The notes under the pieces: generated by a model | The model's database searches: none | Told to the model about the DNA's origin: nothing | What the model saw: the letters and a program-made list of their open reading frames with translations, nothing else | Shown here: one piece after another, positions 16,717-52,101 of the stretch | Numbering within the stretch: position 1 is the first letter of the stretch | How the letters are laid out: each line of letters begins with the position of its first letter | Assembly: GCA_002269645.1 (NCBI GenBank) | Contig: NIVC01001554.1 | Coordinates: 146,298 to 210,297 of the forward strand | Origin: Macrostomum lignano | Taxonomy: Eukaryota | Reading direction: 5' to 3' | DNA: 64,000 nt | Program-made: the position numbers and the translations under genes

Positions 16717-18744
16717 TCAGCAGCCAGTATCGGCTCCGGAGTTCCACGGCCACAGCAGCGCGGGTCCTTCATCATCAGCCTCATCTTGGCCATCGGTCTC
16801 GGCCTCGCCGCCATCCTCATCGTCGCTGGAGTAGTGCCGGTCGCGGCCGCTGCTCGACTCTTCGTCCTCGGGCAGGCCGATCAGGAATTGTCGATCGCCG
16901 CTAAGCCGCAGTCCGGCGGCGATTAGGGCGTCGGCCACCTCATCAGGGGTGGCACTCAGCGACTTCAGCACGACGTAGTTGCACAGGCGGCTGATGGGCA
17001 GGCGCACCAGGTCTCCATAAGGATCATCGCTGTTGCTGTCATCTGAATCGGGCACTTCGGCCGTGCTCCGGCGATGCCGTTCAAACAGCAGGCTGGTTCG
17101 GGCGCATCTGACCGCCTCCTGGGCCAGGTGCTCGTCGCGCGGCAACTCCGTTTGCCATGGGAACTCAAATTTTAATACTTCCTTATATGGCTCGGCTGTT
17201 GAATAGTCGCTGACAGTGTCATTTGGAACAAATGCGCGGCTTATAGCGTGACCAGAAGTATCACTAGGATTTGTGACGTCACCGGAAGTACCAGTATAGC
17301 TCGTAGGGATATCAACGGAAGCACCAATATGATTAGTGACGTCATAGGAAGTCCCAGTACGATTAGTGATGTCACCGGAAGAAACAGTATGATTAGTGAC
17401 GTCACCGGAAGCAACAGTATGATTAGTGACGTCACCGGAAGCAACAGTATGATTAGTGACGTCACCGGAAGCAACAGTATGATTAGTGATGTCACCGGAA
17501 GCAACAGTATGATTAGTGATGTCACCGGAAGCAACAGTATGATTAGTGACGTCACCGTAAGCAACAGTATGATTAGTGACGTCACCAGAAGCAACAGCAT
17601 GATTAGTGACGTCACCGGAAGCAACAGCATGATTAGTGACGTCACCAGAAGCAACAGTATGATTAGTGACGTCACCGGAAGCAACAGTATGATTAGTGAC
17701 GTCACCGAAAGCAACAGTATGATTAGTGTCGTCACCGGAAGCAACAGTATGATTAGTGACGTCACCGGAAGTCTCAATACGTTTAGTGACAGGCCCTGGC
17801 AACAAGGTAAATACGGCAATCTGCGAGCAGTGGCCAATCATCTTCAGGCCGTCGGGCGCGTCGCCAACGCCAGTGAATCGAACAGCGTAGCCGTACCGGC
17901 GGGCGATGGACTGCGACCAGGCCTGGAACTGAGCCCGAGTCCATTCGAATTTGTGATCATGATGCCGCAGGCCAGGAAAGCGCGGCCCGAAGCAGGTATT
18001 GAACTCGGCATTGGGAGTGGTGACAACAACCAGGCCGGGCCTCAGCTGGCCAAACAGGTGGCCGGGCAGCCTGGCCAGCTGGTCAAGCGGCAGGTGTTCG
18101 ATCATTTCCACTAGCAGAGCGGCGTCGGCGCCGGCAAGCCTAGCATCTGGCTCGGTGGCGCAGCCGGCCAGCAGCCTGGCGCGCATTGGCCGGCTCCGCT
18201 TCTTCATGTAGTCGCCGACAGTCGGCGCCAGACTCTGCCTGGCCGCTTCCAGCATCACCGGGTCCTGTTCGGCGACGTAGTCGACTGCCAGATAATCGAC
18301 ATCGAATCGGAGAAACTTCAACGATTGAGAAAACAGGCGGCACTCGGCGGCGCCAAGGTCGATCAGTTTGATCACGCCGGGCCGCCTGCTGTCGTTGCCG
18401 AACCGCTCCACTAGCAGGTCGAACGCGGCCGTGTATCGCTGCTTGTACAGCGGCGGCGAGAAGCTTACAGTTAGCGACGTCGACGATTCGACTCGGTCGC
18501 GATCATCGCCGCCTCCGACTGGCTGGAAGCAGGGCCGACGGGGAAATACGACGCGCTGTGCGGCCAGACCGAGCAGCTGCCACGGAGGCCATTGAGAGGC
18601 TTCGCTTGCTTCGATGGACTCGTACCAGGCTGGCCGGCTGTAGGACCGGTAGAATGCGGTGGAATTGGCGGCTGAATTCGCAGACGCAGCAGCTGACGAA
18701 TTGTCGTCCGGTGCGTTGTCGAACTGGCCGACAGAAGCTGCCTC
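16717..18744 (-). CDS. HENMT1: Small RNA 2'-O-methyltransferase HEN1, main coding exon
   Basis: The frame is open upstream of the ORF-track start to acceptor TTTTCACACAG|GAG at 18744. Motifs: FSPPLYKQRY, IDLGAAEC (SAM binding), EMIEHL, TTPNAEFN, RHHDHKFEWTRAQFQAW, CSQIAVF; acidic C-terminal tail. TGA at 16717 is followed closely by AATAAA. Confidence 0.93.
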   Translation of the reverse strand, partial: EAASVGQFDNAPDDNSSAAASANSAANSTAFYRSYSRPAWYESIEASEASQWPPWQLLGLAAQRVVFPRRPCFQPVGGGDDRDRVESSTSLTVSFSPPLYKQRYTAAFDLLVERFGNDSRRPGVIKLIDLGAAECRLFSQSLKFLRFDVDYLAVDYVAEQDPVMLEAARQSLAPTVGDYMKKRSRPMRARLLAGCATEPDARLAGADAALLVEMIEHLPLDQLARLPGHLFGQLRPGLVVVTTPNAEFNTCFGPRFPGLRHHDHKFEWTRAQFQAWSQSIARRYGYAVRFTGVGDAPDGLKMIGHCSQIAVFTLLPGPVTKRIETSGDVTNHTVASGDDTNHTVAFGDVTNHTVASGDVTNHTVASGDVTNHAVASGDVTNHAVASGDVTNHTVAYGDVTNHTVASGDITNHTVASGDITNHTVASGDVTNHTVASGDVTNHTVASGDVTNHTVSSGDITNRTGTSYDVTNHIGASVDIPTSYTGTSGDVTNPSDTSGHAISRAFVPNDTVSDYSTAEPYKEVLKFEFPWQTELPRDEHLAQEAVRCARTSLLFERHRRSTAEVPDSDDSNSDDPYGDLVRLPISRLCNYVVLKSLSATPDEVADALIAAGLRLSGDRQFLIGLPEDEESSSGRDRHYSSDDEDGGEAETDGQDEADDEGPALLWPWNSGADTGC
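17270..17775 (-). repeat. 30-nt coding minisatellite inside HEN1 ((S)GDVTNHTVA x ~15-17)
   Basis: GATTAGTGACGTCACCGGAAGCAACAGTAT units; the reading frame is maintained throughout. Confidence 0.95.
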
Positions 18745-18955
18745 CTGTGTGAAAATGGTTTTAATCAGCCTTAAATAAAGTACAAATGTACTTTAAAAGT
18801 TTAGATAAAGTAATTTGTACTTTTAAATCGAGCACATGTACTTTAAACAGAGTACTTGTGCTAAGAAAGTACACGTGTACTTTTTTCTTGGGGTAACACG
18901 AGAAATCGAATAAAGTTTCGTCAGCCTTAAAACTGTCAACGGTGCAAACACTTAC

Positions 18956-19163
18956 CGACTCAATCAAGTACTGCTGTTGCTCCTGTTGCTGAGTTGATGA
19001 AGGATCAACCAGCTGGTTTGAAACAGTTGAAACTGACGCCACGGCCGACGCTTCGGCAGACGGGGCGGCAGCAGCAGAAGCAGGCTGCTGTGCGACATCG
19101 GGGCAGTCGCCGCTGCTCAGTGACGCTGTGGGGGTCTGGTGTGCGGGGTGAATGGCGGGTGAC
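18956..19163 (-). CDS. HENMT1: HEN1 upstream exon (Ala/Ser/Gln-rich); 5' boundary uncertain
   Basis: Donor TCG|GTAAGT at 18955, phase 0, in frame with the main exon across a 211-nt intron. Candidate acceptors are AATAG|G (19163, phase 2) and CACCAG|ACC (19135, phase 0). No in-frame ATG. Confidence 0.6.
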
Positions 19164-19247
19164 CTATTCAATATAAACAAAACATATGGCAATTTTTATC
19201 ATAAATATTTAATCATCTGGTGTCTCTGTTACCGCTTTTCAGTGGTT

Positions 19248-21432
19248 AATGGGCGATTCTTAACGGTGTCTAGTGGGCGATTCTCAGCGGTGTCTAGTGG
19301 GCGATTCTTTAGGTGTCTAATGGGCGATTCTTAACGGTGTCTAGTGGGCGATTCTTTAGGTGTCTAGTGGGCGATTCTTTAGGTGTCTAATGGGCGATTC
19401 TTAACGGTGTCTAGAGGGGGATTCTTTAGGTGTCTAATGGGCGATTCTTTAGGTGTCTAATGGGCGATTCTTTAGGTGTCTAATGGGCGATTCTTTAGGT
19501 GTCTAATGGGCGATTCTTTAGGTGTCTAATGGGCGATTCTTTAGGTGTCTAATGGGCGATTCTTAACGGTGTCTAGTGGGCGATTCTTTAGGTGTCTAAT
19601 GGGCGATTCTTTAGGTGTCTAATGGGCGATTCTTAACGGTGTCTAATGGGCGATTCTTTAGGTGTCTAATGGGCGATTCTTTAGGTGTCTAATGGGCGAT
19701 TCTTAACGGTGTCTAATGGGCGATTCTTTAGGTGTCTAATGGGCGATTCTTTAGGTGTCTAATGGGCGATTCTTAACGGTGTCTAGTGGGCGATTCTTTA
19801 GGTGTCTAGTGGGCGATTCTTTAGGTGTCTAATGGGCGATTCTTTAGGTGTCTAATGGGCGATTCTTAACGGTGTCTAGTGGGCGATTCTTTAGGTGTCT
19901 AATGGGCGATTCTTAACGGTGTCTAGTGGGCGATTCTTAACGGTGTCTAGTGGGCGATTCTTTAGGTGTCTAATGGGCGATTCTTAACGGTGTCTAGTGG
20001 GCGATTCTTTAGGTGTCTAATGGGCGATTCTTTAGGTGTCTAATGGGCGATTCTTTAGGTGTCTAATGGGCGATTCTTTAGGTGTCTAATGGGCGATTCT
20101 TTAGGTGTCTAATGGGCGATTCTTTAGGTGTCTAATGGGCGATTCTTAACGGTGTCTAGTGGGCGATTCTTTAGGTGTCTAATGGGCGATTCTTTAGGTG
20201 TCTAATGGGCGATTCTTAACGGTGTCTAATGGGCGATTCTTTAGGTGTCTAATGGGCGATTCTTTAGGTGTCTAATGGGCGATTCTTAACGGTGTCTAAT
20301 GGGCGATTCTCAGCGGTGTCTAGTGGGCGATTCTTTAGGTGTCTAATGGGCGATTCTTTAGGTGTCTAATGGGCGATTCTTAACGGTGTCTAGTGGGCGA
20401 TTCTTTAGGTGTCTAATGGGCGATTCTTTAGGTGTCTAATGGGCGATTCTTTAGGTGTCTAATGGGCGATTCTTAACGGTGTCTAGTGGGCGATTCTTTA
20501 GGTGTCTAATGGGCGATTCTTAACGGTGTCTAGTGGGCGATTCTTTAGGTGTCTAATGGGCGATTCTTTAGGTGTCTAATGGGCGATTCTTAACGGTGTC
20601 TAGTGGGCGATTCTTTAGGTGTCTAATGGGCGATTCTTTAGGTGTCTAATGGGCGATTCTTTAGGTGTCTAATGGGCGATTCTTAACGGTGTCTAGTGGG
20701 CGATTCTTTAGGTGTCTAATGGGCGATTCTTTAGGTGTCTAATGGGCGATTCTTTAGGTGTCTAATGGGCGATTCTTTAGGTGTCTAATGGGCGATTCTT
20801 AACGGTGTCTAGTGGGCGATTCTTTAGGTGTCTAATGGGCGATTCTTAACGGTGTCTAGTGGGCGATTCTTTAGGTGTCTAATGGGCGATTCTTTAGGTG
20901 TCTAATGGGCGATTCTTAACGGTGTCTAGTGGGCGATTCTTTAGGTGTCTAGTGGGCGATTCTTTAGGTGTCTAATGGGCGATTCTTAACAGTGTCTAGT
21001 GGGCGATTCTTTAGGTGTCTAATGGGAGATTCTTTAGGTGTCTAATGGGCGATTCTTTAGGTGTCTAATGGGCGATTCTTAACGGTGTCTAATGGGCGAT
21101 TCTTAACGGTGTCTAATGGGCGATTCTTAACGGTGTCTAGTGGGCGATTCTTTAGGTGTCTAATGGGCGATTCTTAACGGTGTCTAGTGGGCGATTCTTT
21201 AGGTGTCTAATGGGCGATTCTTTAGGTGTCTAATGGGCGATTCTTTAGGTGTCTAATGGGCGATTCTTAACGGTGTCTAGTGGGCGATTCTTTAGGTGTC
21301 TAATGGGCGATTCTTAACGGTGTCTAGTGGGCGATTCTTTAGGTGTCTAATGGGCGATTCTTAACGGTGTCTAGTGGGCGATTCTTTAGGTGTCTAATTG
21401 GCGATTCTCAGAGGTGTCTAATGGGTGATTCT
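19248..21432. repeat. 23/24-nt minisatellite GTGTCTA(A/G)TGGGCGATTCTT(TAG/AACG), ~93 copies
   Basis: Visible tandem repeat with interspersed variants. Confidence 0.98.
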
Positions 21433-24080
21433 TGGCGAAATTTGGCACTTCAACAGAAAGCAGGTGTTTTAATCAGCATTGCAAAAAGCAGTGTAATATT
21501 TAAAATATTTTGGCACCAAAATGGTCCCGTTTAATGTTACTAAAGTAGAAAGTCAGACAGAAGGATGCGGGTAGGCAAAAAATCTCCCATAAACAATGCT
21601 GCATCAAAATCCGCGACATCTGTTAGTTGTGACTTGGAAAATCTTTCAATCTTTCCGGACCATATTGGACTGTGGGCAATGTTTTCACTACCAACAAAAC
21701 TACCAGAGTCAACGTCGGCTTGTGATCCCCCCATCAACTTTTGACTGTTTATTTGGATTAGAATTCGCACCGAGCCGCCTTCTTCTTTTAAAGCTTTAGG
21801 TGGCGCTATCAAGTTACGCTGCCAGTAATTAATATAAAAAATGACACCAAACTCCGGTCTAACATCGATCATTTTTTAAGAAATCGCGCTTTCTGAGAGC
21901 TTGTAGATGCCTAATGGTGTAGCCAATACTGTACTCAGGCACGCACTCTGTGGCCGCGCCCCTTGCCACTTAACTGTCAGCGTCTTTGTATTTTACATTA
22001 TCTACAAATCAAGGAGCTGGCAATAGGCGAACTCATAATAAATAATGATTGCTTTAGGGCAAGAATCAGCTGTTGAGGCCTGAGCCACGGCCCGTAGCAG
22101 GCTTCTGTGAGGGTGTTAGATAGAATTGGCCACTTTAACGGGATAAAGGGGGACAAGACAGAAATCAAATGTTGAACAACCGGCACAATGATTGAATATG
22201 ATTGCGCATCATCGGGTTAACAATTATACATTTGAAAACTAACTATAGACCCTGAAGCCTCACAGGTGCTAGCTACGTTAATTCAGCCGCAATATTTTAT
22301 AGGGGCTCGCACACCGCGGGGGGGGGGCTTGAGGGAGGGACAGACAGACAGCCAGGAATAAGGCGGTGCGAATCTCTCCACTCTCTTAAAACAAGAGAGC
22401 CGACAAAGTTAAAGCAGAGAAGAAACGAAGTGTGATAATAAGAGGCAGAGGTAAGGGTTGGTTAAAGACATGGCCAACACAGGACGAAGACAAAGAATTA
22501 TAGAGCGAATAGAAAAGAATTTGATCTTAAAAACAAGCCGGGTCATGGGAGAGAGAGAGAAAGGGAAGTCTGCGTATTGGGCTATTGACAATTGCCACCT
22601 TGGGGATTTCAATAGTGAAATAAACCGAAACCAGTGGGGAGAAAAAAGTTTCCGGCCAAAGTATTAGCTATCTGCCTAGCTGTCAGTTGTTAATTGAAAC
22701 AGAGACAGAGCGTGGAGCGTGCGGCGGGAATGATCGAGGAATTGCAACGTGCTGTCCTTCCTAGTAGGCTTCCTATAGGCCTATAGATATAGATAGAAAA
22801 CCGGCGAGGTCGCCCGCATTTCTCGGACCGGCCCCGCCCCCCCCCCTCACTCCCCCGACTCGCCTCGGGGGGTCAGGCGCGAGCGGTTTGGCTCTTATAC
22901 TCTATAAATGCATAAACCCACATAGCGAAGAGTAAGGTAAAAATAAGGAAGCATCAACAGGCCGATCCCGCATAATTCGAATTCAATTTTAGCTCGCGAT
23001 CTGTTCTTCTTCTACAAGCCCAAAAGCAGAAGAATATAGAAGAGAACATACGCAAGTCTTTCCCTGCACCGTTTGCGTAATTAGACCGTGGAAAAAACCC
23101 GCATAGGTGTGGGGGGAGGGAGAGGGAATAGAATGGGAAGATTTGGAAGGAGGGCCATCGCGCCGAGTTTTGACACCGCGCTGCGCAGTAGAAGCGGGGA
23201 AATTTAAAAGAGAGAAAAAAGCAGACACAAAGAAAGAGATCGCCACGTCCCGATTAACGCAGGAAAGAGAAAAACACCAGACCGACCTGTTACGCAATGC
23301 ACAACTTTAAGCCTCTCTCACCATTTATATACTTGCATTAAAATAATGGCTGATGTAGAGACAGCGATAACCTACGCTCCCCCATTCAAGCCGTCTTGAG
23401 GAGCTTCATCTTGGGCGCGGGATGCTGGACACACTGGCTTGACTCGAATTCTGTGACGGGAAATGCCCCAAGCAGACCAACACCCCCACCCAGCAAGATA
23501 ATCCGCAAACTGGCAGATTAGCAAATTATATGTTAGCCTTTTCTTCTTAAAAAATTTTCTAAACTAATTGGCCTCTTCTAAAAGCAGTTCCACACAAGAT
23601 TAGAAACACACTCGGAAGCTAACAACCGTCTCTGATAGGAGATCAAGTGAAAACTCAGGTGCGAATTCAACTGTTACGAGTAGAAAGAGAAAGAAAGCGG
23701 CACGTGGCCCCTGCCGAAGCCTTCCTGCTAATGCAGTTTCTGCACGCAAAGATTTCTGCTTGGAGAAATGATCACACACACCTTTGAGCGATAAAACTGA
23801 CAAGCCATTATTACTAAAAAAACTTCATAAGTTGAAATGAATAAATAAAACGCAACAAGAAAGTAAATTTAAACACTTAAAATACGTTAGTCTGCATTTG
23901 GATTTAATTATTAAACAATCCGACATTAATTAAGGTATTACAGGAAAACGTGACAGCGCGCTTTAGAACCATAACAAATCAGCCAATGAGTTAATATAGA
24001 AAACTATAGATCTTTTCTCTAAAACCTCTCAAAGGGGACACACATTATCTATACTGTTTTTATCGCTCACTGAGATCTCA

Positions 24081-24963
24081 TAGGTGAGATTTTAGCGCCA
24101 ATCTACCACAGATGAGATTTTAGCGCCAATCCAACACCACAGGTGAGATTTTAGCGCCAATCCAACACCACAGGTGAGATTTTAGCGCCAATCCAACACG
24201 ACAGGTGAGATTTTAGTGCCAATCCAACACGACAGATGAGATTTTAGCGCCAATCCAACACGACAGGTGAGATTTTAGCGCCAATCCAACACCACAGGTG
24301 AGATTTTAGCGCCAATCCAACACGACAGGTGAGATTTTAGTGCCAATCCAACACGACAGATGAGATTTTAGCGCCAATCCAACACCACAGGTGAGATTTT
24401 AGCGCCAATCCAACACGACAGGTGAGATTTTAGCGCCAATCCAACACGACAGGTGAGATTTTAGCGCCAATCCAACACCACAGGTGAGATTTTAGCGCCA
24501 ATCCAACACCACAGGTGAGATTTTAGCGCCAATCCAACACCACAGGTGAGATTTTAGCGCCAATCCAACACCACAGGTGAGATTTTAGCGCCAATCCAAC
24601 ACCACAGGTGAGATTTTAGTGCCAATCCAACACGACAGATGAGATTTTAGCGCCAATCCAACACCACAGGTGAGATTTTAGCGCCAATCCAACACCACAG
24701 GTGAGATTTTAGCGCCAATCCAACACCACAGGTGAGATTTTAGCGCCAATCCAACACCACAGGTGAGATTTTAGCGCCAATCCAACACCACAGGTGAGAT
24801 TTCAGCGCCAATCTAACACCACAGATGAGATTTTAGCGCCAATCTAACACGACAGGTGAGATTTTAGCGCCAATCCAACACCACAGGTGAGATTTTAGCG
24901 CCAATCCAACACCACAGGTGAGATTTTAGCGCCAATCCAACACCACAGGTGAGATTTTAGCGC
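24081..24963. repeat. 31-nt minisatellite CAGGTGAGATTTTAGCGCCAATCCAACAC(C/G)A, ~28 copies
   Basis: Tandem repeat; its 22-nt core is identical to that of the 9066-10510 array. Confidence 0.98.
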
Positions 24964-25146
24964 AGAAATCAAGAATTGTAGATAATTGATTTAGCTTCAG
25001 AAGGTTTTAGTTATTTTTGGCCTACAACTTTCATGCAAAACGCAGAGGAACTGAAATGGCATCCAAATTGCATAAACCAATCATAAAGCTTGAACTAACA
25101 CCAACCTTTAGACTAGCACCCTATCTGCACATAGTTTCTCAGCGCG

Positions 25147-25584
<438 letters not shown>

Positions 25585-25669
25585 TTAGTAACTGTGTGCT
25601 AGTATTATAGCAATTTAATTATAGTAACTTTATACTCAATGTAAATTTAATGGAATACCTAATGTTACA

Positions 25670-25998
25670 ATACCGAAACTTCACCTACCGAAACTTTACC
25701 TACCGAAAGCTTCACATACCGAAACTTCACATACCAAAAGCTTCACATACCAAAAGCTTCACATACCAAAAGATTCACATATCGAAACTTCACCTACCGA
25801 ATCTTCACATACCAAAAGCTTCACATACCAAAAGCTTCAGATACCAAAAGATTCACGTACCGAAATTTCACCTACCGAAGCTTCACATACCAAAAGCTTC
25901 ACATACCAAAAGCTTCAGATACCAAAAGCTTCAGATACCACAAGATTCAGATACCGAAACTTCACCTACCGAAACTTTACATACCGAAAGCTTCACAA
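25670..25998. repeat. 15/16-nt minisatellite (CCGAAACTTCACATA / CCAAAAGCTTCACATA)
   Basis: Degenerate tandem repeat ~110 nt inside the ZNF330 intron from its acceptor. Confidence 0.9.
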
Positions 25999-28031
25999 AA
26001 GCAAATATTTTAAGCCCAAACTTTCCATGCCAAAAATCAAGCTATTCAATATACATTATATATAACATATATTGTACATTACAAATCGAACTGAATTCTA
26101 ATAACTATGGGTAGTTAAATTTATAAAACATGACAAAATTGACTAGAAAAGCAAATTATTTTATTGCGTTCTATATTAATTCCGAGTCTGCAAAAGCGCC
26201 TAAATCTAGTTAGAGTGGGATGCGGCAAATCATATAAGTATCTTTACTTGCCGTGTATCGAGGCTTAAAAAAGCAAAAATGTACGAGCAAAAGAGACGCC
26301 TGGGGCTTAAGAATTACGAAACACACTTGTTATCCACTTGAATTGATAGAAGAAAGCCAATTATTAAAAAGACATTTTTCATTTGTCTTAACCGACAATT
26401 TTTCTTTATCTAATTGTTATTGTAGAGGAAGTGAATTCTTTGATACTTTTGCTAGCTTCGTGTCGGTAAGTTGTTTTTCTTTCACAAGGAATATTCAGGC
26501 CAGATTCCTCTAGGCCGAGTAAATTGCAACATATTGCTTAGAGTCAGCGGGCGGTAGGCCCAGAGCCGCTAGCATCTTTTATTTTTGTCTGGTTTTCTTG
26601 TTCTCCAGATCGGTTCGATAAACCGTTAATAGCCGGCTATGCAGTGAAGCATGCCAGACAACAATTATATCGAGTCCAAATCCCATTCACAGTGTATAAG
26701 CTCTGCTCCAAGTTAGGAGACGGAAATCTTCTCATCCATGAATAATGCCGGCACAATCTGTTGAAGTAATTCCTTTCCTGCCTTTCCTTGCCATAATTGA
26801 AGGACAAAAAACAATAGGGACTTAAAAATAGTCGATAAAATCGCTACAGCTAATCTTCTAGGAGTTGAAAGAGCGCCTTTTCAAAGCCTTGGATACAACG
26901 GCAGCTTCAATGCGATCTCGATAACTCAACACGATACGGTTGTCAGAGTGAATTCCAAAGAACACCAAGCAGATCGGATGTCGAACTTCTCTGTTGTGAT
27001 GAAGCAATTAGTTTGCCACAACTGAAAATCAGATAGAAGAAGCTGAAGAGCCTGCCAGCCCTCAGATTTTCTGAGTCAGGAAACGCGCGGAGGACGGCAG
27101 CAGCTGCAGCAATAAAGAATGAGGAGAGAAAAAGAGGGAGCCACGCGTCTCCTCAGTTTTTATTCGCCAAGTGACAATTCGGAGGGATGGAATTCGCCTT
27201 TGAGCTTTCTATTTAACAACCGCAGCCGCCGACAGACGGGCGTTCAAGAGTGGAGGATCGGAAACAAACACTGGTTGCTAGGCAGATGAGCAAGCACAGT
27301 AACAAAACCAGCAGCCGCTGCGGCTCCCTGCTCCGTAAAAAAACAGCAATCGATGACAAGCGGCCCAGGATGATAAATTTGATGAGTGGCGGCTGATGAC
27401 AAAAGCGAGGTAGCAACCAAAAACGCAGACGGCTGGAGTGCTGCTTGTCTTTGACTAGCACAGCTTGTGGATTTTCCACGGGGGAATGGCGCCTGTCTCA
27501 ATTTTTATCCCTCCCCATACTACAAGAGGCGCTAAGTCTCTTAAATATCCTTGAGATCGCTTTATCGGCACAATGTGACAATTCTCCTCCATTCAGCAGG
27601 CTCACTGACATTATTCAAAAAATAGCGGCGCTGATTGATGCCCAATATTAGCTCAGCCGGCACGCCCTGCCTAGGATCTAAGATTGAGCAGATTTGCTTA
27701 CGAGTTCATTCTTAATCATTTCCTTTCTTCTGCAAACACGCGCGCGGTGTATTTTCCCTTTTCCGTTGCCGTGGCAAAAAGCCACTAACGTGGATACAGG
27801 CAAAGGGATAAATGATAAGCCGCTTATACAAACTAATTCCTCACTTTTCAAACCCTAAAAACTTGTCAACGGTAAGCAGTTACACACAGATCTACTCGAT
27901 CCGATTATTTCACTGAATTAGCAGCATTTTTCGCTATTTCAAGCTCATTATTAATATTACAGTTGAACCACTTTTACATGTCCTTGACTTTTACATAGAT
28001 TTTACATGAAATTGATTCTTTAACAAACCTT

Positions 28032-39322: not shown

Positions 39323-40355
<1,033 letters not shown>

Positions 40356-40936
40356 GCTAAGCGTAACGAAGGCTGATCGATAAGGCAGCTAAAGCGTCAA
40401 ACCTAGCCTACCTGCCTACTAGTAGTAAAGAGCAAAGCAATGCATCGAATTTGCTATCCAGACAAGCAAAATATGTCGCATTTAATGCTGAAATAACACA
40501 GATTTATGTAGCGCCTGGAGGCAATAAATACACACAGCTTGAAATAGAATTGGCAGACGCTATTATAATAAATGTTTCATGACACAGAATGCTGAAGCGC
40601 GCAAAAATCGATGACACAAAATTAAGTTTTGTGGTCGGCAAGTCGGCAGGGCCAATCAATCAATTGGAAATGTTGTCAGACAAAAACAGCAAAATGAAAC
40701 AAAGCAAAAAAACATCAACAATTCAGACAATTTTATTTGCACGGCAGCATTATTTTTTGTTCGATAAAATGAAAATGAGCAGAAAGAAAACTAATAATGC
40801 GGAAGACAGCTCACAACAGAAACATGAAGTGAAAATGAGCATCAACTATTTGAATCTTGATCGGATTGGCTACAAGCTCAATAAATTAGATTTATTTTTT
40901 AACTTGGAATAGTTTTGTGAAATAATCATTCAGAAG

Positions 40937-41347
40937 ACTTTAGTGGTGATTCAGAGACAGCACTGCGGACTCCATAAGGCTGATTATTCAGAGACAGCAC
41001 TGCGGACTCCATAAGGCTGATTATTCAGAGACAGCACTGCGGACTCCATAAGGCCGATTATTCAGAGACAGCACTATGGACTCCATAAGGCCGATTATTC
41101 AGAGACAGCACTGTGGACTCCATAAGGCTGATTTTTCAGAGACAGCACTGCGGACTCCATAAGGCTGATTTTTCAGAGACAGCACTGCGGACCTCATAAG
41201 GCTGATTATTCAGAGACAGCACTGTGGACTCCATAAGGCCGATTATTCAGAGACAGCACTGCGGACTCCATAAGGCCGATTATTCAGAGACAGCACTATG
41301 GACTCCATAAGGCCGATTATTCAGAGACAGCACTGCGGACTCCATAA
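40937..41347. repeat. 36-nt minisatellite TTATTCAGAGACAGCACTGCGGACTCCATAAGGC(C/T)GA, ~11 copies
   Basis: Visible tandem repeat. Confidence 0.96.
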
Positions 41348-41835: not shown

Positions 41836-42001
41836 TCAATTGCGAACCAACGACCGGCCCAGCCTGCCGCCGCCGCCTCCTCCGTTGGCATCGAAGACGG
41901 TCACTTCGTCGTCTGCGTCGTCTTCATCAAGTCGCTGCATCTCCAGCTTGTCGGCGTCAACCAATCCGTAGCGACGAGACTTGCTAGCCCGGCGCCGCAG
42001 C
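41836..42001 (-). CDS. FAM174: FAM174-like membrane protein, last exon (cytoplasmic tail)
   Basis: CCAACAG|G at 42001 (phase 2). LRRRASKSRRYGLVDADKLEMQRLDEDDADDEVTVFDA resembles the FAM174 tail (K-T/S-R-R/K-YG-V/L...E-M/L..L..DDEDD..TLFDA). TGA at 41836. Confidence 0.78.
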
Positions 42002-43566
42002 CTGTTGGCAATTGTAAGCAAGTTATGCACTACTGTCCTGACTGACAACAATTAGATTATAGAACCAGGTACAAACTAGCATTTTAGAGACCTCAACTGG
42101 CAAGAATTAAAACTATTCCTACAAAGCTTTATTTAACATTTATAAAAAGTGTTCTAAAAAGTTTGTTGAACCATGTGCAATACAAAGAAATATTATAAAT
42201 ATTATGCAATTTTGTTAAAAACAATACTTAAATTTATCATTAATATATAGAGTATCAACCCAGATTTATTTAAATATATCAACACCACACTAGAAGCATT
42301 TAGTAGGATAAAACATCTTTGCAATGTCAATTTCATCTAAATCTAGCCATATTGGAAAATGGTTGATCTACCTTGATGAAGAATTTATTGTTCTATGATC
42401 ATATCTACTTGATCTACTGCTATTATATAATCTCTCTTTACTATTAATTTGCAACTTAATATCTATTGTGTCTATATGTATAATTTATAAACAACTTTGC
42501 AATAATAGATTTTAAATCAATTATTTATAATCAGGTGCAGATCTAAAAATTTGAACGAATGGTGCAGGTTACTAAGGTACTTTGGCTTTGATTATGTGTT
42601 ACTCATAGAAAGAAAGAGAAAATCTAAATTGATAGAGGCATACCCATTGTGTCTCCTATATTTGATATTATTTATTGTACAAAAATTAAAAAGGAAATAT
42701 ATACCTATTCTAATCTATAAATTGTATATTCCCTAAATGGACCACTTAGGTTTCTTGGGTGAGCCCATTAGACCCAATGTATCTCTTGAAAGTTTTAGAG
42801 ATCACTGTCTCTATATAGTTTAAGTTCAGTAGCTTAAGCATTAAATGCATTGTACAATAATCCATATTTGTTATATATATTTATGTATTGAGTCTATATT
42901 GGCATGACACAACATCTTACACTGTAGATGGTTGATCTTTTGTTTGGCTTGTCAATTCTATTGCTGCTAATTGCAAAGCTAATGTCACCTATGTCAGTTC
43001 TTACTATTATTGTCTCTATAACAATATAGGCTATCTCATTGCTAGAACAGTTAACTTCCAAACCATATGTTCTTTCAATAAAACATAGGTGCTGCAGCCT
43101 CTCATATAGCAACTGAGCAAGTTTAAAACCCTTATCATTAATTTTCTATTCAGTACAGCTCATGCATATAAATGGCTAACAACTGCATATTTTTCCTTAC
43201 CATGACAGAAAAGAATATCTATTTCCCACAGCTAAAAAACAGCTAAAGTGTCTATGGTTGGCTTAAATAATTTTTATAGCTTTTGTAGGTTCAAATTTTT
43301 AATAGTTTGCATAGAGTGGCCTATGTTCTAATCTATTACCATTTAAAACTATGACTATCTTGGTCATGCACCATAAAGTATGGCATCCTTTAATTGCATT
43401 AGATATAAAGTGTAAGTTATATAAAATATAGGCATGGGCTAAACTATAATAAGTTAAAATATATTAATGTTAAAGCTTATTCATTATTGTCTTGAAATAG
43501 AATTACATCCTTCCTCCTATATACTAAAAATGAAATGTCTGTAACTAACTAGCTATGCGATAGATT

Positions 43567-43720
43567 TCAGAAAAAATGGCTCAACCGATTTTCTTCAAAC
43601 TTGCACCATTCGATCAGAAATTTTCCTGGGACGGTACATGCATCTTGGCTAAGAAATTGCTCAATGTTAAAGGGATTAAATATTCGAAAAACATGCTTTT
43701 TTGCAAAGGTCAAGCCAAAT
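43567..43720 (+). mobile_element. Possible Helentron/HINE (DINE-1-like) non-autonomous element remnant
   Basis: CAGAAAAAATGGCTCAACCGATTTTCTTCAAACTTG resembles the conserved GGCT(G/C)AACCGATTTT..TGAAA(C/T)TT core of these elements. Ends not defined. Confidence 0.35.
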
Positions 43721-43989
43721 TTTTGACTTGAAATGCATTGTAAGAATGCTAGAGAAAAAACTGACTGGCTGAATAACGATTGTGATAAAGATTGCATCAC
43801 AACAAGTTGAAAACAGTGCCACAGAAATGCACACAAGACTTGATTGAAATTGCGTAACCATATTGCTAACTTGAATTGAGACTGATACTGGCTGACTGAG
43901 AAATTGATTATGTCATAACTTTCTACTCCAATTGACTTGCTGTAAGAATTGAATTATAAGGGCCACAATTCATGTTCTCCAAATGAAAA

Positions 43990-44070
43990 GAGATAGCCCA
44001 GATGCGAACAGACTGGGATGCTAATGTAGTGACCTGGGTTCGAATCTTAGTAGTGCAAAAGATTTTTTTA
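43990..44070 (+). pseudogene. tRNA-like sequence (tRNA pseudogene or SINE head)
   Basis: A-box-like TAGCCCAGATG (43994), B-box GGTTCGAATC (44037-44046), then a T-run; the cloverleaf stems pair poorly. Confidence 0.4.
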
Positions 44071-44111
44071 TTAAAACACATTAAAAACACAAAACTGCTA
44101 CACATAAAAGA

Positions 44112-46250
44112 AGCACAATGTCAAACATAGAAGAGCAACCATGTTGAACATTAAAGAGCCACCATGTCGAACATAAAAGAGCCACCATGTCAAGCATAAA
44201 AGAGCCACCATGTCAAACATTAAAGAGCCACCATGTCAAACATTAAAAAGCCACCATGTCAAACATATACGTGACTCCATGTCAAACATAAAAGAGCCAC
44301 CATGTAAAACATATATTTATGACTCTTTGTCGAACATAAAGAGCCACCATGTAAAGCATTTACGTGACTCCATGCCAAATATATACGTGACTCCATGTCA
44401 AACACATACGTGACTCCATGTCAAACATTAAAGAGCCACCAAGTAAAAAATTGAGAGCCACTATGTCAAACATTAAAGAGCCACCATGTCAAACATTAAA
44501 GAGCCACCATATCGAACACTAAAGAGCCACCATGTCAAACATATGTGACTCCATGTCAAATATATACGTGACTCCATGTCACACATAAAAGAGCCACCAT
44601 GTAAAACATATACATATGACTCCATAACAAACATTAAACAGCCACCATGTCAAACATTAAAGAGCCATCATGTCAAACATAAAAGAGCCACCATGTCAAA
44701 CAATAAAGAGCCATTATGTCAAACATTAAAGAGCCACTATGTCAAACATTAAAGAGCCACTATGTCAAACATTAAAGAGCTACCATGTCAAACATATATG
44801 TGACTCCATGCCAAATATATACATGACTCCATGTCAAACATTAAAGAGCCACTATGTCACACATTAAAGAGCCACCATGTCAAACATATACGTGACTCCA
44901 TGTCAAATATATACGTGACTCCATGTCACACATAAAAGAGTCACCATGTAAAACATATACATATGACTCCATAACAAACATTAAACAGCCACCATGTCGA
45001 ACATTAAAGAGCCATCATGTCAAACATAAAAGAGCCACCATGTCAAACATTAAAGAGCCATTATGTCAAACATTAAAGAGCCACTATGTCAAACATTAAA
45101 GAGCCACCATGTCAAACATATACGTGACTCCATGCCAAATATATACATGACTCTATGTTGAACATTAAAGAGCCACTATGTCACACATTAAAGAGCCACT
45201 ATGTCACACATTAAAGAGCCAACATGTCAAACATTAAAGAGCCACCATGTAAAGCATATATGTGACTCCATGCCAAATATATACATGACCCCACCATGTA
45301 AAGCATATATGTGACTCCATGCCAAATATATACATGACCCCATGTCTAACACATACGTGACTCCATGTCAAACATTAAGAGCCACCCTGTTGAATGTTAA
45401 AGAGCCACAATGTAGAACATTAAAGAGCCACAATGTAGAACATTAAAGAGCCACAATGTAGAACATTAAAGAGCCACAATGTAGAACATTAAAGAGCCAT
45501 GATGTCAAACATTAAAAAGCCATCATGTCAAACAATAAAGAGCCACAATGTAGAACATTAAAGAGCCACCATGTCGAAGATTAAAGAGCCACAATATGTA
45601 GAACATTAAAGAGCCACAATTTCGAACAATAAAGAGCCACCATGTCCAACATTAAAGAGCCACCATGTCTAACATTAAAGAGCCACCATGTCAAACATTA
45701 AAGAGCCATCATGTCAAACAATAAAGAGCCACCCTGTCGAACATTAAAGAGCCACAATGTAGAACATTAAAGAGCCACAATGTAGAACATTAAAGAGCCA
45801 CAATGTAGAACATTAAAGAGCCACAATGTAGAACATTAAAGAGCCATGATGTCAAACATTAAAAAGCCATAATGTCAAACAATAAAGAGCCACAATGTAG
45901 AACATTAAAGAGCCACCATGTCGAACATTAAAGAGCTACAATATTTAGAACATTAAAGAGCCACAATGTCAAACATTAAAGAGCCACCATGTCGAAGATT
46001 AAAGAGCCACAATATGTAGAACATTAAAGAGCCACAATGTAGAGCATTAAAGAGCCACAATGTAGAGCATTAAAGAGCCACCATGTAGAACATTAAAGAG
46101 CCACAATTTCGAACAATAAAGAGCCACCATGTCGAACATTAAAGAGCCACCATGTCGAACATTAAAGAGCCACCATGTCAAACGTAAAAGAACCACCATG
46201 TTGAACATTAAAGAGCCACCATGTCAAACATTAAAGAGCCGCCATGTCAA
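44112..46250. repeat. ~23-nt minisatellite AACATTAAAGAGCCACCATGTC(A/G) with ATACGTGACTCCATGTCAAAC variants
   Basis: 2.1 kb degenerate array in the FAM174-like intron, with internal block duplications. Confidence 0.95.
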
Positions 46251-46362
46251 ACATAAAAGATACACAATTTCAAACGTAAAAGTAAGCGTCATGCCAATTT
46301 TAAAGGAGCCACTATAGAGCTAAGGAAATTGTTGCACTAGCTACTTATTGTCTGGTAGATGC

Positions 46363-46506
46363 TTGCTATTTGGGGATGCTTGCTATCTGGGGGATATGCT
46401 TGCTATTTGGGGGATGCTTGCTATCTGGGGGATGCTTGCTTTTTGGGGGATGTTTGCTATCTGGGGGATGCTTTCTATCTGGGGGATGCTTGCTATCTGG
46501 GGGGTG
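46363..46506. repeat. 18/19-nt repeat GATGCTTGCTATCTGGGG, ~8 copies
   Basis: Visible tandem repeat. Confidence 0.93.
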
Positions 46507-47071
46507 ATTTCTTTTTGCATTACACTTTATTTGAGCAGTTCTTCTGTTGTCTTTGTGAAGGCTTTATTTGGCTGTCTTTTTGTTACTTGTAGAGAACAGA
46601 GATTCTATCCAGATGTCCCCCAATGGGGGGCGAAGATTGCTAGTTTATTACTAGAACTAAAGCTTTATATAAAAGAATAATCTATATAAAAGGCTAGGCC
46701 TATAAACTAAAATGCCATATTTAAAGACATGTTGGCTATGTCTAAAATAAAAAAAGCATATTAACAATGATTATGCCTCTAATAGTAATTAAGTCCATAC
46801 TACAATATAAACATGGCTAGACCATTGTGCCTTTGCCTATAATATTAGAGCTTATAATAGACATGGTGGCCATATATCTTAAACAATATAGAATGTTTCT
46901 CAGTAGAAACAGCAGCCATGTTAATGGAGTCTACATAGTATTAGCAGCTATATCATTGATGATTTTATATTTAAAGACATACCATAGTCAAGAAGGTGGC
47001 ATGTATATACCAGAATTAAATTTGGGAAGAAATCTCTATATATGCCAAATATGCTAAAAATTGGAAATGAC

Positions 47072-50000
47072 ATGTATTGGTTTCCCGACAGACATTCAGA
47101 CAGACATTCAGAAATCGTTTAGTAAATGTTTAACAAAATTTGCTATTTAGTACGCAAGATGGTGTAAATTTTCAGACATTTTTACGCATGTCTCTGCTTT
47201 AAAAAGACACCTCAGACACACACAAAGACGCTTCACAAACTGAGACATTCCCTAGCAACTGTTGTTACGACGTTTCCCAATATACCGAATACTGTATATA
47301 GTAGTTTTTTGAGAAGCCGCTACATCGTCCCACTTTGGTCTTGCTGCATGAAATTTGCACAGCTGTTTTACGCATGTCTCTGCTTTAAAAAGACACCTCA
47401 GACACACACAAAAATGCTTCACAAGCTGAGACATTCCCTAGCAACTGTTGTTACGACGTTTCCCAATATACCGAATACTGTATATAGTAGTTTTTTGAGA
47501 AGCCGCTACATCGTCCCACTTTGGTCTTGCTGCATGAAATTTGCACAGCTGTTTTACGCATGTCTCTGCTTTAAAAATACACCTCAGACACACACAAAGA
47601 CGCTTCACAAGCTGAGACATTCCCTAGCAACTGTTGTTACGACGTTTCCCAATATACCAAATACTGTATATAGTAGTTTTTTGAGAAGCCGCTACATCGT
47701 CCCACTTTGGTCTTTCTACATGAAATTTGCACAGCTGTTTTACGCATGTCTCTGCTTTAAAAAGACAACTCAGACACACACAAAAATGCTTCACAAACTG
47801 AGATATGCCCTAGCAACTATTGTTACGACGTTTCCCAATATACCGAATACTGTATATAGTAGTTTTTTGAGAAGCCGCTACATTGTCCCACTTTGGTCTT
47901 GCTGCATGAAATTTGCACAGTTGTTTTACGCATGTCTCTGCTTTAAAAAAACACCTCAGACACACACGAAAATGCTTCACAAGCTGAGACATTCCCTAGC
48001 AACTGTTGTTACGACGTTTCCCTATATACCGAATACGTATATTGTACGTAGTTCAGCCTAGACATTGCTGATCACTGATCAAGCCTCAACAATGGGCAAA
48101 CCTCAACTGCTAGGTATCCTCAGCTGTCTCCTCGAGCACTCTGTCATCATCTGGATGCCGTCGTCGGCACCTTTAACAGATTACGCCATGTGACTATATA
48201 TGAACAGCTAGCCTGATAAGAATTTTTCTAGTTTCGCTGATCAAGCCTTGAAAATGGGCAAGCCTCAACCGCGGGGAATTCTCAGCTAGTCTGTCGAGCA
48301 TTCATTCATCACCTGGACGCCGTCGGCACCTTCAACGGACTACACCAGCTGACTATGGACACTCTGATGCAAATACATGTACGCCAGATTTTTCTTATCG
48401 AGCTTCAATAATGGGCAAAACTTAACTGCCGGACATTCTCAGCTAGAATCTCGAGCCTTCAATAACCACCCCGATGCCGTCGGGACCTTCAACAGGTGGC
48501 ACCAGGTGACTATGGACATCCTCATACGAATTTCTCTAGTTTCGATATTCAAACCTTTACAGTGCAGGCAAGCCTCAACTGCTAGGTATCCTCAGCTAAT
48601 CTCCCAAGCATTTAGTCATCAGTCATCACCCCGACGCTAGGCATCTTTAACAGATGACACCAGGTGACTGTGACCACCCTGATGCAAATTTCTCGAGTTT
48701 CGCCAATCAAGCCTCGACAGTGAGCAAGCCTCAACTTTTGGACACCCTCAGCTAGTCTCTCTAGCATTCCGTCACCACTCCGACACCGTCGGCACCTTCA
48801 ACAGGTGGCATCAGATGACTATGGACATCCTTTTGCAACTATGTCAGGTTTTTCTTATCAAGCTTCAATAATGCGCAATCTGTAACTCCAGTTTATTCTC
48901 AGCTAGAGTCCCAAACAGTCTATTATCACCCGACAATTATGTAAACATGATGAGGTAATTTGTTAATTAAACTAAATTGAACAGAATGTTCACGAAAAGA
49001 AGAAAGCACTAAAAACTACCAAATTTTCTGTGTATAATGAAGATAAAGTTACAATATATTGATACTAAATATCAAGTCTTCTGTCTTAAAAGTTACTATT
49101 TGTTTCAAAAAAATCATACTTCTGGGTGTCCATGGTCATGGTTTCGTCTCTTTGAAGGTGCCGATGACGGCAGAATGACGACAGAATGCTTGAGAAACTT
49201 GTTAAGGATGCCTAGCAGTTAAGGTTTGGCAATTATTAAAGCTTGATAAAAAATCTAGCATATTTGCATCAGAGTGTCCATAGTCAGCTGGTGTAGTCCA
49301 TTGAAGGTGCCGACGGCGTCCGGGTGAAGACTAAATGCTCGAGAGACTAGCTGAGGATGTCCAGCAGTTGAGGCTTGCCCACTCATATCGAGGCTTGATT
49401 AGCGAAACTAGCTGAGAAATTTGAACAGCGTGTCCATACATGTAGACACCTGTTTCAACTTGTTGAAGGTCCAGAAGCTCCGCCTGGGTGAAGGCTAGTG
49501 ACCAACAAGGTCAAATAAATCTGATGCAGACACATGTGGTCGACGTGCTGACGAAATTTGGAGACTTGGCAAGGCTGCACTGAGGCGCAGTGCTTATTGG
49601 CACACAGGGTGTAATACACTGGCGCTTATGGGAAAATCCAACCATCTGCAGGCAGAATCATCGAATATCTCGACGGTCCAGAGGGCTGGCGACGACTTGA
49701 TTCTTGTTCGAGAAGGTGCGTAGCAAAAAGTAAGCCCGTGTTCTTGAATTTCGTGCGCCCACGTTGCTCCGTGTCGACGCATCAAAAAATGTCAGCTGGG
49801 ATGGGGGATTCCCTGTTCTACTGTTAATAATAGAACAGTAATATTAGTATATAGTAATAAAAGAAATACAGTAATACGATCGTAATAATCTTATTATATC
49901 ATTATTAATAGTACTAATTTCAATAATAGTCTTAATAATATTGTAATAATAATACATTTGGTATTCTAAGAAAACGTCGTAACAACAGTTGCTAGGGAAT

Positions 50001-50547
50001 GTCTCAGCTTGTGAAGCGTTTTTGTGTGTGTCTAAGGTGTCTTTTTAAAGCAGAGACATGCGTAAAACAACTGTGCAAATTTCATGTAGAAAGACCAAAG
50101 TGGGACGATGTAGCGGCTTCTCAAAAAACTACTATATACAGTATTCGGTATATTGGGAAACGTCGTAACAACAGTTGCTAGGGCATATCTCAGTTTGTGA
50201 AGCGTTTTTGTGTGTGTCTGAGTTGTCTTTTTAAAGCAGAGACATGCGTAAAACAGCTGTGCAAATTTCATGTAGAAAGACCAAAGTGGGACGATGTAGC
50301 GGCTTCTCAAAAAACTACTATATACAGTATTCGGTATATTGGGAAACGTCGTAACAAAAGTTGCTAGGGAATGTCTCAGCTTGTGAAGCGTCTTTGTGTG
50401 TGTCTGAGGTGTCTTTTTAAAGCAGAGACATGCGTAAAAATGTCTGAAAATTTACACCGTCTTGCATACTAAATAGCAAATTTTGTTAAACATTTACTAA
50501 ACGATTTCTAAATGTCTGTCTGAATGTCTGTCGGGAAACCAATACAT
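47072..50547. mobile_element. Non-autonomous Foldback/Mutator-like DNA transposon (3,476 bp) with 9-bp TSD
   Basis: Termini ATGTATTGGTTTCCCGACAGAC... and ...GTCTGTCGGGAAACCAATACAT are inverted, with ~3 mismatches over the first ~115 nt. GGAAATGAC is duplicated at 47063-47071 and 50548-50556. The arms contain 186-bp tandem repeats (~4.6 left, ~2.5 right). No transposase ORF. Confidence 0.9.
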
Positions 50548-51325
50548 GGAAATGACTATTATTTATAACAAAAGTTTAAAATTATGACTTAGCTTTTGTA
50601 CTGCAACAATAATAGACCTATTTTCTATCATTATATTTGATATTTATATATACATTATAACAAAATAAGTGTTGTTTCTATTTTTCCTTTATAAATAATT
50701 TGTAGTTATATACTTGTGTTGTGCAAAGTTCTGATACTTAAATTCTTTAAATCATTATATTATTATATCTAATTAATAATTATTCTTTTTTCATTTGCAC
50801 TCCCATTATCTATCATCTCTTAACTGCAACCTTTTTCTTTGAAATGTTTTATATTTGTTACAGAAACTTGCACTTATTTTTGAATAGCTTTGTATATCAC
50901 TTTTTTATATGCCAAATCCCAAATGTATTTTTATTTTGTATACAAAAGGCCCATGCCAAAATTTTTTTTTAAGATTTAAGCATGCCAAACATGCATACGA
51001 AATGAACTATGAAGGGCTAGAATTTTCAAGCAAAAAGGACACCTTCCTGACTATGGAAAACATAGGCCTAGAGGGTGGCTGTGTCTCTATTAGGCTTATA
51101 GAATCCATTCAACATTGGAAACAGTGGCAGTCTCTTTATTGCCAAAAATTAAAGCAACTGTTCCCTGTACCATGTGTGCTTACATGTATATCATACATGG
51201 CAGATGTGCCTATAAGCTTTAACCTCATAGACATAGTTGCCATTTCTAAAATTAATAAGTACTCCAAAACTAAAAATCAATCAAACAATGTTGCCAACAT
51301 ATAAGAACAATATTTTACAACTTAC

Positions 51326-51690
51326 ATGACAGACTTGGCAACAAAGAACAACAGCACAAGGGCTGTAAGAACACACAAAATCACCGCACTTTTTAGTAGT
51401 GTTTGTTTGTTTTCTAGAACAAAAGAGTTTACTTTATTATTCCACGTAGCTGTTGGATTAATAGCTGGAATAGATGTTGGACTAACATAATAGGCACTAG
51501 ATTTCATCCAAGGCGAGCTCATAGTGTTGAAAGGACTAGGCGATAGTGTAGTCATAATTATTTTATAAATAATAGGAATGGCTAGGTCCTTAGGCCTACT
51601 CCTAGGATATTTATTTTGCCTAGGCCCTATATAACAAGTCAAGACCAAGAACAAGAACACAGCAATTAACTCCGGACTACAGAAGAATTT
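51326..51690 (-). CDS. FAM174: FAM174-like membrane protein, first coding exon (signal-peptide-like, Ser/Thr/Pro-rich ectodomain, TM); start uncertain
   Basis: TM segment TLLKSAVILCVLTALVLLFFVAKSV; donor AT|GTAAGT at 51325 (phase 2) joins the last exon in frame (..SVM|LRRR) across a 9,324-nt intron. The frame is open to an in-frame TAG at 51693-51691. Confidence 0.72.
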
Positions 51691-52101
51691 CTAGTCTAAA
51701 AAATGACTATATCAACCTAGCAGGACAAATAGGTTTATTACCACAGGATCGCTGTGAAAATTGGTAAATTTAGTTCAAACTAAGAAATATGCGCCAAACA
51801 GACTCGCATGCTACGAATGATTATTCGATCATCGCAGCGGCGTGGTTGTGCGTTTTAAATTCATAAACAAACGAAAATTTTGAGGTTTATTTTTTGTTTT
51901 AAAAACTTTATAAACATCTTTTGCGCGAAAAGTTATACATAACACGATAAACTAAGAACAAATGTTGAAAATTTGTTATAACTTAGTCGTAGCTAGCGAG
52001 CACGAAGTAAATTTAATTTCAATTTTCTGTGAGATTTTAGTAACATTTCTGTAAGATTTTACATCACCGTCTTTTTTTCTTGGATTTTTGTATATGGTGC
52101 C
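51691..52101. promoter_or_regulatory. Putative bidirectional promoter region between the FAM174-like gene and DNAH12
   Basis: Head-to-head coding starts 411 bp apart; near-palindromic E2F-like CTTTTGCGCGAAAAG at 51918-51932. Confidence 0.45.

Follow-up and report, generated by a model that had tools for sequence, protein, structure and literature searches.

In the free-living macrostomid flatworm Macrostomum lignano, the gene for the small-RNA 2'-O-methyltransferase HEN1 very probably receives its initiator codon from the spliced leader. The gene lies in the window, the 64,000-nucleotide stretch analyzed here, which forms the final 64 kb of scaffold NIVC01001554.1 (assembly GCA_002269645.1, Mlig_3_7); the scaffold ends with it, and a coordinate on the record equals the window coordinate used below plus 146297. 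Four co-oriented genes occupy the minus strand of the window: a FAM174/DUF1180-like gene, ZNF330/NOA36, HEN1, and a Bcl-2-family gene. In the reading that we consider likely as a whole, the leader AUG starts HEN1, the other three genes use ATGs of their own, and ZNF330 and HEN1 are perhaps co-transcribed. A first-pass annotation of the same letters had listed these four genes, and each sequence feature that it described was found where it had placed it; it had also assumed a trans-splicing flatworm, and M. lignano does have a leader that ends in ATG (PMC8629364). Its proposal of a leader-donated methionine (Met) is supported for HEN1 by 5'-partial annotation ends and by the Met of a protein derived from complementary DNA (cDNA). 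It did not hold up for the FAM174-like gene, where a product of 131 amino acids (aa) and a TGA codon in the homeolog speak against it.

Probable leader-supplied start of HEN1

M. lignano has a single 35-nt leader, CGGTCTCTTACTGCGAAGACTCAATTTATTGCATG, with the 3' end ...TTGCATG; trans-splicing affects about 30% of its genes, and about 15% have been placed in operons (PMC8629364). In the Mlig_3_7 annotation, the 5' ends of trans-spliced genes were set by mapping leader-trimmed reads, and transcripts were cut where leader-bearing reads map (PMC5730564). We compared three genomic copies of the region, namely the window, a near-identical duplicate (NIVC01000246.1), and a homeolog (NIVC01002975.1). 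The features of the window are collected in Table 1, where, as in the text, a slash marks a splice junction.

The HEN1 frame is bounded on its 5' side by a stop, 19 codons from 19135, and its first genome-encoded in-frame Met is residue 225 (DPVM). This Met lies past both FSPPLY (156) and the S-adenosylmethionine (SAM)-binding motif LIDLGAAEC (188), as the first-pass annotation had remarked. The annotated coding sequence is 5'-partial in all three copies and opens at ACC, right behind cacaccAG. The corresponding NCBI model, PAA66503.1 (BOX15_Mlig032602g3), is labelled 'partial' and has the N-terminus TPTASL, as does UniRef A0A1I8JJ92, a separate protein record that matches another genomic copy; the exon translation is 100% identical to an M. 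lignano UniRef entry. The cDNA-derived GenBank protein ALD16259.1, however, opens MTPTASL, and the genome codon ahead of ACC is CAG (Gln). When Met is added, the spliced genomic sequence encodes 736 aa and shows zero mismatches to ALD16259.1 outside a repeat array, in which the cDNA-derived protein has 80 fewer decapeptide residues than the genome copy. Two phase-0 acceptors had been proposed for this frame, at 19135 and 18744. Both exist; the second is the cis acceptor of intron 1, and the first is the annotated 5' end.

The methyltransferase core is 41-43% identical to named animal HENMT1 proteins (E down to 1e-46); a Pfam search reported no domain at E < 0.1. The HENMT1 cluster Mlig032602 was flagged TRANSSPLICED and scored as neoblast-enriched in a published supplement (PMC5816591).

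Taken together, these data point to the following course of events. The HEN1 pre-mRNA would be trans-spliced at cacaccAG/ACC, with 19135 as the first exon base. Because the leader ends in ATG, its 3'-terminal AUG would fall in phase 0 (...TTGCATG/ACC CCC ACA), giving the messenger RNA (mRNA) ...UUGCAUG ACC CCC ACA, and this AUG would act as the initiator. It is the only AUG able to start a protein with the SAM-binding motif, and we therefore consider it highly likely that the leader supplies the initiator Met. The first Met of ALD16259.1 would then be the leader AUG as used by ribosomes, and the N-terminal peptide of HEN1 should be (Ac-)MTPTASLSSGDCPDVAQQPASAAAAPSAEASAVASVSTVSNQLVDPSSTQQQEQQQYLIESEAASVGQFDNAPDDNSSAAASANSAANSTAFYR or semi-tryptic parts of it.

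Several points weigh against this interpretation. The leader junction is drawn from a protein sequence and from annotation boundaries, not from leader-bearing reads or cDNA nucleotides, and initiation at the leader AUG in M. lignano is a prediction from sequence. The TRANSSPLICED flag sits on cluster members g1, g5, and g6 and not explicitly on g3, the copy in the window. In addition, the Met of ALD16259.1 could in principle derive from a cis exon with ATG at its 3' end, for which 23324-23322 is a candidate.

A candidate for such a cis-spliced upstream micro-exon (...AAATG/GTGAGA, 23338-23322), which the first-pass annotation had already pointed out, is indeed present. It is identical in the three loci, it is the only ATG/GTRAG in the 6-kb spacer, and its joining to 19135 would yield the same M-TPTASL protein as ALD16259.1. 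With copies 92-95% identical, however, the exact conservation of a 23-mer among them is not significant. If the micro-exon were used, the HEN1 models would be called complete and not 5'-partial, but none of the three RNA-sequencing-guided models contains it and all of them are 5'-partial at 19135. The TRANSSPLICED flag of the cluster also speaks against it, and we regard this source of the Met as very improbable.

The other alternative accepts trans-splicing at 19135 but places the start of translation at Met225 or at a non-AUG codon, so that the leader AUG would be irrelevant. The context of the leader AUG is weak, with U at position -3, and translation itself is judged here from sequence. 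A start at Met225 would nevertheless delete FSPPLY and the SAM-binding LIDLGAAEC, and in the mRNA no AUG precedes the leader AUG, which is in frame with an open reading frame (ORF) of 736 codons. In-frame leader AUGs are used in Schistosoma mansoni, according to PMC9851317 and PMC12582326. The probability of this alternative is slighter still than that of the micro-exon, and initiation at the leader AUG remains the preferred reading for HEN1.

The HEN1 decapeptide array (SGDVTNHTVA) occupies ~17240-17840 on the minus strand, within 16717-18411. At this array NCBI splits the HEN1 gene of the window into two models (427 aa and 270 aa); the duplicate locus has one 735-aa model.

Table 1 Features of the window, in window coordinates
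Feature	Start	End	Strand	Remarks
HEN1 trans-splice acceptor AG (cacaccAG/ACC)	19136	19137	-	First mRNA base 19135, phase 0; 5'-partial coding sequences in three loci
HEN1 coding exon 1, 60 codons, TPTASL...YLIES, no in-frame ATG	18956	19135	-	Donor TCG/gtaagt
HEN1 intron 1, cis-spliced, GT...cacAG	18745	18955	-	Junction YLIES/EAASV in cDNA-derived protein ALD16259.1
HEN1 exon 2: FSPPLY, LIDLGAAEC, VEMIEHL, (SGDVTNHTVA)n array, stop	16717	18744	-	Matches ALD16259.1
Candidate cis micro-exon ...AAATG/GTGAGA	23322	23338	-	Sole ATG/GTRAG in the ZNF330-HEN1 spacer
23-nt tandem repeat array, ~94 copies, spacer/outron	19247	21433		Ends ~110 nt upstream of the HEN1 acceptor
tAGacTAG, two competing FAM174-like acceptors	51691	51697	-	Exon start 51695 (leader AUG out of frame) or 51690 (in frame)
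FAM174-like exon 1: putative signal-peptide-like stretch, ectodomain, transmembrane segment	51326	51690	-	Donor AT/gtaagt
FAM174-like internal ATG, codon 46, MTTLSPSPF...	51553	51555	-	Start implied by the 131-aa product
FAM174-like intron	42002	51325	-	9.3 kb
FAM174/DUF1180-like exon 2 (G + LRRRASKSRRYG...SLVRN + stop), acceptor ttgccaacAG/G	41836	42001	-	Homeolog protein junction; NCBI gene end 41836
ZNF330/NOA36 exon 1	39331	39868	-	Annotated 5'-partial start 39868 (LLIKAAN); own ATG 39847-39845
ZNF330/NOA36 exon 2 with stop codon	25147	25556	-	Exact 315-aa product PAA66504.1
Genome-encoded ATTTATTGCATG, last 12 nt of the M. lignano leader	39870	39881	-	Adjoins the annotated ZNF330 5' end
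Bcl-2-family first coding exon, ATG 8224, preceded by cacAG/c	7835	8224	-	From sequence
ORF (stop to stop) containing the Bcl-2-family exon with BH1/BH2 motifs	4179	4481	-	Pfam PF00452
Axonemal dynein heavy-chain gene, ATG 52102, runs off the scaffold end	52102	64000	+	Divergent from the FAM174-like gene

HEN1 compared with known leader-supplied starts

HEN1 is a new, well-supported example of a known flatworm mechanism and not a new mechanism. To our knowledge, it has not previously been pointed out as leader-started, although the Met is already part of its GenBank protein. The literature on M. lignano trans-splicing that we consulted, including PMC8629364 and PMC5730564, does not discuss leader-donated starts, and FAM174, ZNF330, and HENMT1 have no row in the supplements of PMC5173321 and PMC5946080.

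The use of the 3'-terminal AUG of a flatworm leader as an initiator goes back to Cheng et al. 2006 (J Biol Chem 281:733), as cited in PMC9851317 and PMC12582326. According to the same papers, the leader AUG is in frame in 28% of the trans-spliced mRNAs of S. mansoni, and over 40 cDNAs need it. ORFs of this kind have been named 'slORFs' (Song et al. 2023, PMC9851317). HEN1 shares their features, since its leader ends in AUG, its acceptor lies in phase 0, no genome-encoded AUG precedes the essential domain, and the Met of the cDNA-derived protein is joined to the first exon codon. Unlike the Schistosoma slORFs, its host is a free-living macrostomid, and the case is made here from sequence rather than from a translation assay.

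Within M. lignano, the CAG acceptor of HEN1, the TRANSSPLICED flag, and neoblast enrichment agree with what has been described for trans-splicing in this species (Wudarski et al. 2017, PMC5730564; Ustyantsev and Berezikov 2021, PMC8629364). It should be noted that the acceptor CACCAG fits only the CAG part of the M. lignano [T/C]TNCAG motif. Like other animal HENMT1/HEN1 methyltransferases, the protein has the FSPPLY and LIDLGAAEC motifs; unlike them, it has an N-terminus that is long and of low complexity, and its decapeptide array is lineage-specific.

Such starts have practical consequences, as annotations of trans-splicing flatworms mark these genes 'partial' or miss their N-termini because the start codon is absent from the genome. 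HEN1 is an enzyme of the PIWI-interacting RNA (piRNA) pathway and is neoblast-enriched; if its start is read correctly here, the enzyme could not be made without trans-splicing, which would tie leader addition to the expression of a stem-cell and germline factor. Transgenes or knock-ins that include the HEN1 5' region would have to preserve both the acceptor and its phase.

The FAM174-like gene

For the FAM174-like gene, the most likely start is an internal ATG of its own at 51555. Its first exon was assigned through P0246 (102 aa, the annotated product of the homeolog), the sole match to the exon 1 translation in a representative library, which reads ...VAKSVM/LRRRASKSRRYG (KSVM/LRRRASK) across the junction. 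Exon 2 alone scores 41 bits against Pfam DUF1180 (PF06679; cut-off 27.7). Because the score rises to 60.4 bits across the KSVM/LRRRASK junction, exon 1 belongs to this gene; the match spans the transmembrane segment and the basic/acidic tail (profile positions 96-163). A different exon 2 acceptor, gtcAG/G at ~42040, was ruled out by the P0246 junction, which sets the true exon 2 start at 42001. Between 42 and 52 kb, no other first exon encoding a transmembrane segment was found that improved on 51690-51326.

The product annotated by NCBI at this locus is a DUF1180 protein of 131 aa that ends at 41836. This length equals the 77 codons from codon 46 to the donor of exon 1 plus 54 from exon 2, and a start at 51555 gives 131 aa that hold the entire DUF1180-matching stretch. 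The annotation retains 5'-partial frames for HEN1 and for ZNF330, where seven codons stand ahead of the Met. A transcript that began at 51690 would therefore have been given 176 aa, and the 131-aa product implies that the transcript holds the TAG at 51693-51691, with its 5' end upstream of the proposed acceptor. According to the positive-inside rule, a basic tail behind a membrane segment should orient the N-terminus outside. As a strongly basic tail follows the transmembrane segment, the 131-aa protein should insert N-terminus-out; most likely it has no cleavable signal peptide, and its N-terminus, outside the membrane, is followed by the transmembrane segment and then by the basic tail.

The alternative, advanced in the first-pass annotation, is that this gene is leader-started as well. 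The TAG at 51693-51691, which doubles as an in-frame stop, would then serve as the acceptor (acTAG/AAA, exon start 51690) and give a type I membrane protein of 177 aa, MKFFCSPELIAVFLFLVLTCYIG..., that carries a signal peptide. The sequence allows this: M+KFFCSPE... indeed yields 177 aa with the exon 2 acceptor at 42001, and the phase-0 AG overlaps the sole stop in the frame. Other observations likewise count against the internal start. The frame ahead of the codon-46 ATG is open for 45 codons (p ~0.04 by shuffling), with 4 and 7 stops in the other frames, and it is hydrophobic and resembles a signal peptide. Members of the FAM174 family are type I membrane proteins with signal peptides. The codon-46 start itself is derived from length arithmetic, the sequence of the 131-aa product being deduced, and the homeolog, which is called upon below, may be merely decaying.

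We nevertheless consider a leader-donated start of the FAM174-like gene unlikely. The annotated product has 131 aa and not the 176 aa of a 5'-partial model, and the hydrophobic peptide is a translated T-rich tract. In the homeolog, the only one available, the upstream frame reads KIFCCPELIAVFLFLVLT and then stops, as TGA replaces TGT at codon 19. Out of frame and 5 nt upstream of 51690 there is a better acceptor, TTTTTTAG (AG at 51697-51696), as the first-pass annotation had itself cautioned, and a third AG 14 nt downstream (ctgtAG) would place the exon start at 51676. All three acceptors are TAG, whereas CAG is preferred. Moreover, the codon-46 start still yields a protein expected to be N-terminus-out. 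An open frame adjoining an AG is thus insufficient evidence of a leader-donated start.

The stronger TTTTTTAG/ site (51695) is one possible 5' end of the gene. With trans-splicing at this site, all that the leader AUG would begin in the FAM174-like mRNA is an upstream ORF of 10 codons (MTRNSSVVRS). With two TAG acceptors 5 nt apart, a targeting switch can also be conceived, in which 51690 would give the 177-aa type I protein with a signal peptide and 51695 the 131-aa protein without one. The choice of trans-splice acceptor would then control the membrane targeting of this protein; we think such a switch improbable. A start at the internal ATG 51555 remains the preferred reading.

The three FAM174 copies have three different annotated 5' ends, with products of 131, 102, and 90 aa. 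The homeolog (NIVC01002975.1, L006 3797-4080) reads tAGaaTAG at the acceptor site, and in its exon 1 a 9-nt insertion makes a tandem TTCCAG TTCCAG. Its annotated coding sequence opens behind the first TTCCAG (ccgttcCAG/), a position that would leave the leader AUG out of frame; what remains of the frame lacks an AUG ahead of the transmembrane segment, and the copy may be decaying. Exon 2 of the duplicate (NIVC01000246.1, L004 3442-3639) differs by two residues (R to Q and A to T), and its product has 90 aa. The 9.3-kb intron and exon 1 lie in an AT-rich island (42000-52000) with a guanine-cytosine (GC) content of 30-43%, compared with 45-60% elsewhere; exon 1 has 36-38% GC and exon 2 has 63%.

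On the other side, the ATG of the divergent dynein gene leaves ~400 nt for the FAM174-like 5' region, and the homeolog is arranged alike. A bidirectional promoter region probably serves both genes.

ZNF330, co-transcription and the remaining features

ZNF330 starts at its own ATG (39847). The annotated protein, LLIKAAN+MPKKK... (315 aa), is matched exactly by PAA66504.1 and PAA87148.1. It shares 65-73% identity over 173 aa with named ZNF330 proteins, and PF06524 is recorded on the annotated product. The first-pass annotation had drawn attention to AG acceptors 1 nt and 5 nt upstream of the ATGs of the Bcl-2-like gene and ZNF330. Both are present, and finding AG within 5 nt of an ATG is not unusual by chance. 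At ZNF330, a leader AUG joined at 39852 would be out of frame, and the annotated 5' end is not 39852 but 39868/39869 in all three loci, where it is preceded by TG and not AG.

This annotated end adjoins a genomic 12-mer identical to the end of the leader. The last 11 nt of the leader, TTTATTGCATG, have one exact match in the window, and it lies here; the homeologs carry TAATTGCATG at this place (L004 and L005, just upstream of position 10001). The 12-mer could have caused a false trans-splice call when reads were leader-trimmed, or it could be a relic of a leader-bearing cDNA. An origin of ZNF330 as a retrocopy of a leader-bearing mRNA was considered and set aside; the intron of the gene spans 13.8 kb, and no more than 8-12 nt resemble the leader. 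A search for a spliced-leader RNA gene in the window found no match to the 23-mer searched for at up to 3 mismatches and none in Rfam.

Polycistronic transcription of the cluster had also been suggested. There are hints of it for ZNF330 and HEN1, which may be co-transcribed and separated by the trans-splice of HEN1. The two genes (Mlig032602g4 and Mlig032602g3) have a common transcriptional-unit prefix, which denotes a cluster of transcriptional units, assembled first and then cut into genes (PMC5730564). Since two unrelated genes carry one prefix, some assembled unit should span both, which favors co-transcription as far as the annotation goes. The '.g3' suffix does not mark the third gene of a unit, as the methods text of the same paper shows (PMC5730564), and only a prefix common to unrelated genes carries information. 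ZNF330 and HEN1 are adjacent and on the same strand, and the downstream gene appears to be trans-spliced, which is the arrangement described for M. lignano operons.

The distance between them speaks against co-transcription. The operon cut-off in M. lignano is a repeat-adjusted intergenic distance of 1 kb, with a mode near 100 nt (PMC8629364). The ZNF330-HEN1 spacer measures 6011 nt; with its 3069 nt of tandem repeats removed, ~2.9 kb are left, which exceeds the cut-off. Likewise unfavorable are the unit name of the homeolog of ZNF330, which is a different one (Mlig013688g1), and the chance that the common prefix stems from read-through or from assembly across repeats.

A single leader-resolved operon of all four genes, driven by a divergent promoter beside the dynein gene, would go further. 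The genes are co-oriented, NCBI calls no further gene between window positions 6717 and 49868, ZNF330 and HEN1 carry one unit prefix, and repeats are known to inflate within-operon distances in M. lignano (PMC8629364). However, the successive spacers between the FAM174-like gene, ZNF330, HEN1, and the Bcl-2-family gene measure 2.0, 6.0, and 8.5 kb (~1.1 and ~2.9 kb for the first two without tandem repeats), the Bcl-2-like gene is without NCBI annotation from window position 6717 up, and the unit name of the ZNF330 homeolog differs. We regard a four-gene operon as unlikely and retain possible co-transcription for ZNF330 and HEN1.

The two genes resemble described M. lignano operons in their common prefix and in a spacer filled with repeat arrays, and differ from them in a spacer of 6.0 kb (2.9 kb repeat-adjusted) that is above 1 kb. 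Co-oriented genes with a trans-spliced downstream gene also recall the SL2-type operons of nematodes such as C. elegans. That species has a specialised SL2 leader without an AUG and spacers of ~100 nt. M. lignano, unlike C. elegans, has one leader, spacers on the kb scale, and a leader AUG that would be coding.

Large tandem-repeat arrays lie in the spacers at 19247-21433, 24082-24963, 39882-40363, and 40949-41347. The motif GAATCGCC is common to the array upstream of the HEN1 acceptor (23-nt unit) and the array upstream of the ZNF330 5' end (50-nt unit), and the latter adjoins the leader-like 12-mer.

The Bcl-2-family gene starts at its own ATG (8224); joining the leader at 8225 would put the leader AUG in another frame. 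Pfam PF00452 matches the ORF at 4179-4481 with 41.4 bits (E = 2.2e-10, cut-off 31.4). The NCBI record has no gene call for the part of this gene from window position 6717 up, which includes the first coding exon. Low-complexity arrays lie between and downstream of its exons, one of them CA/GT-rich (6488-7690) and the other GA-rich (2500-4160), the latter translating as 'ERGESESGRDKR'.

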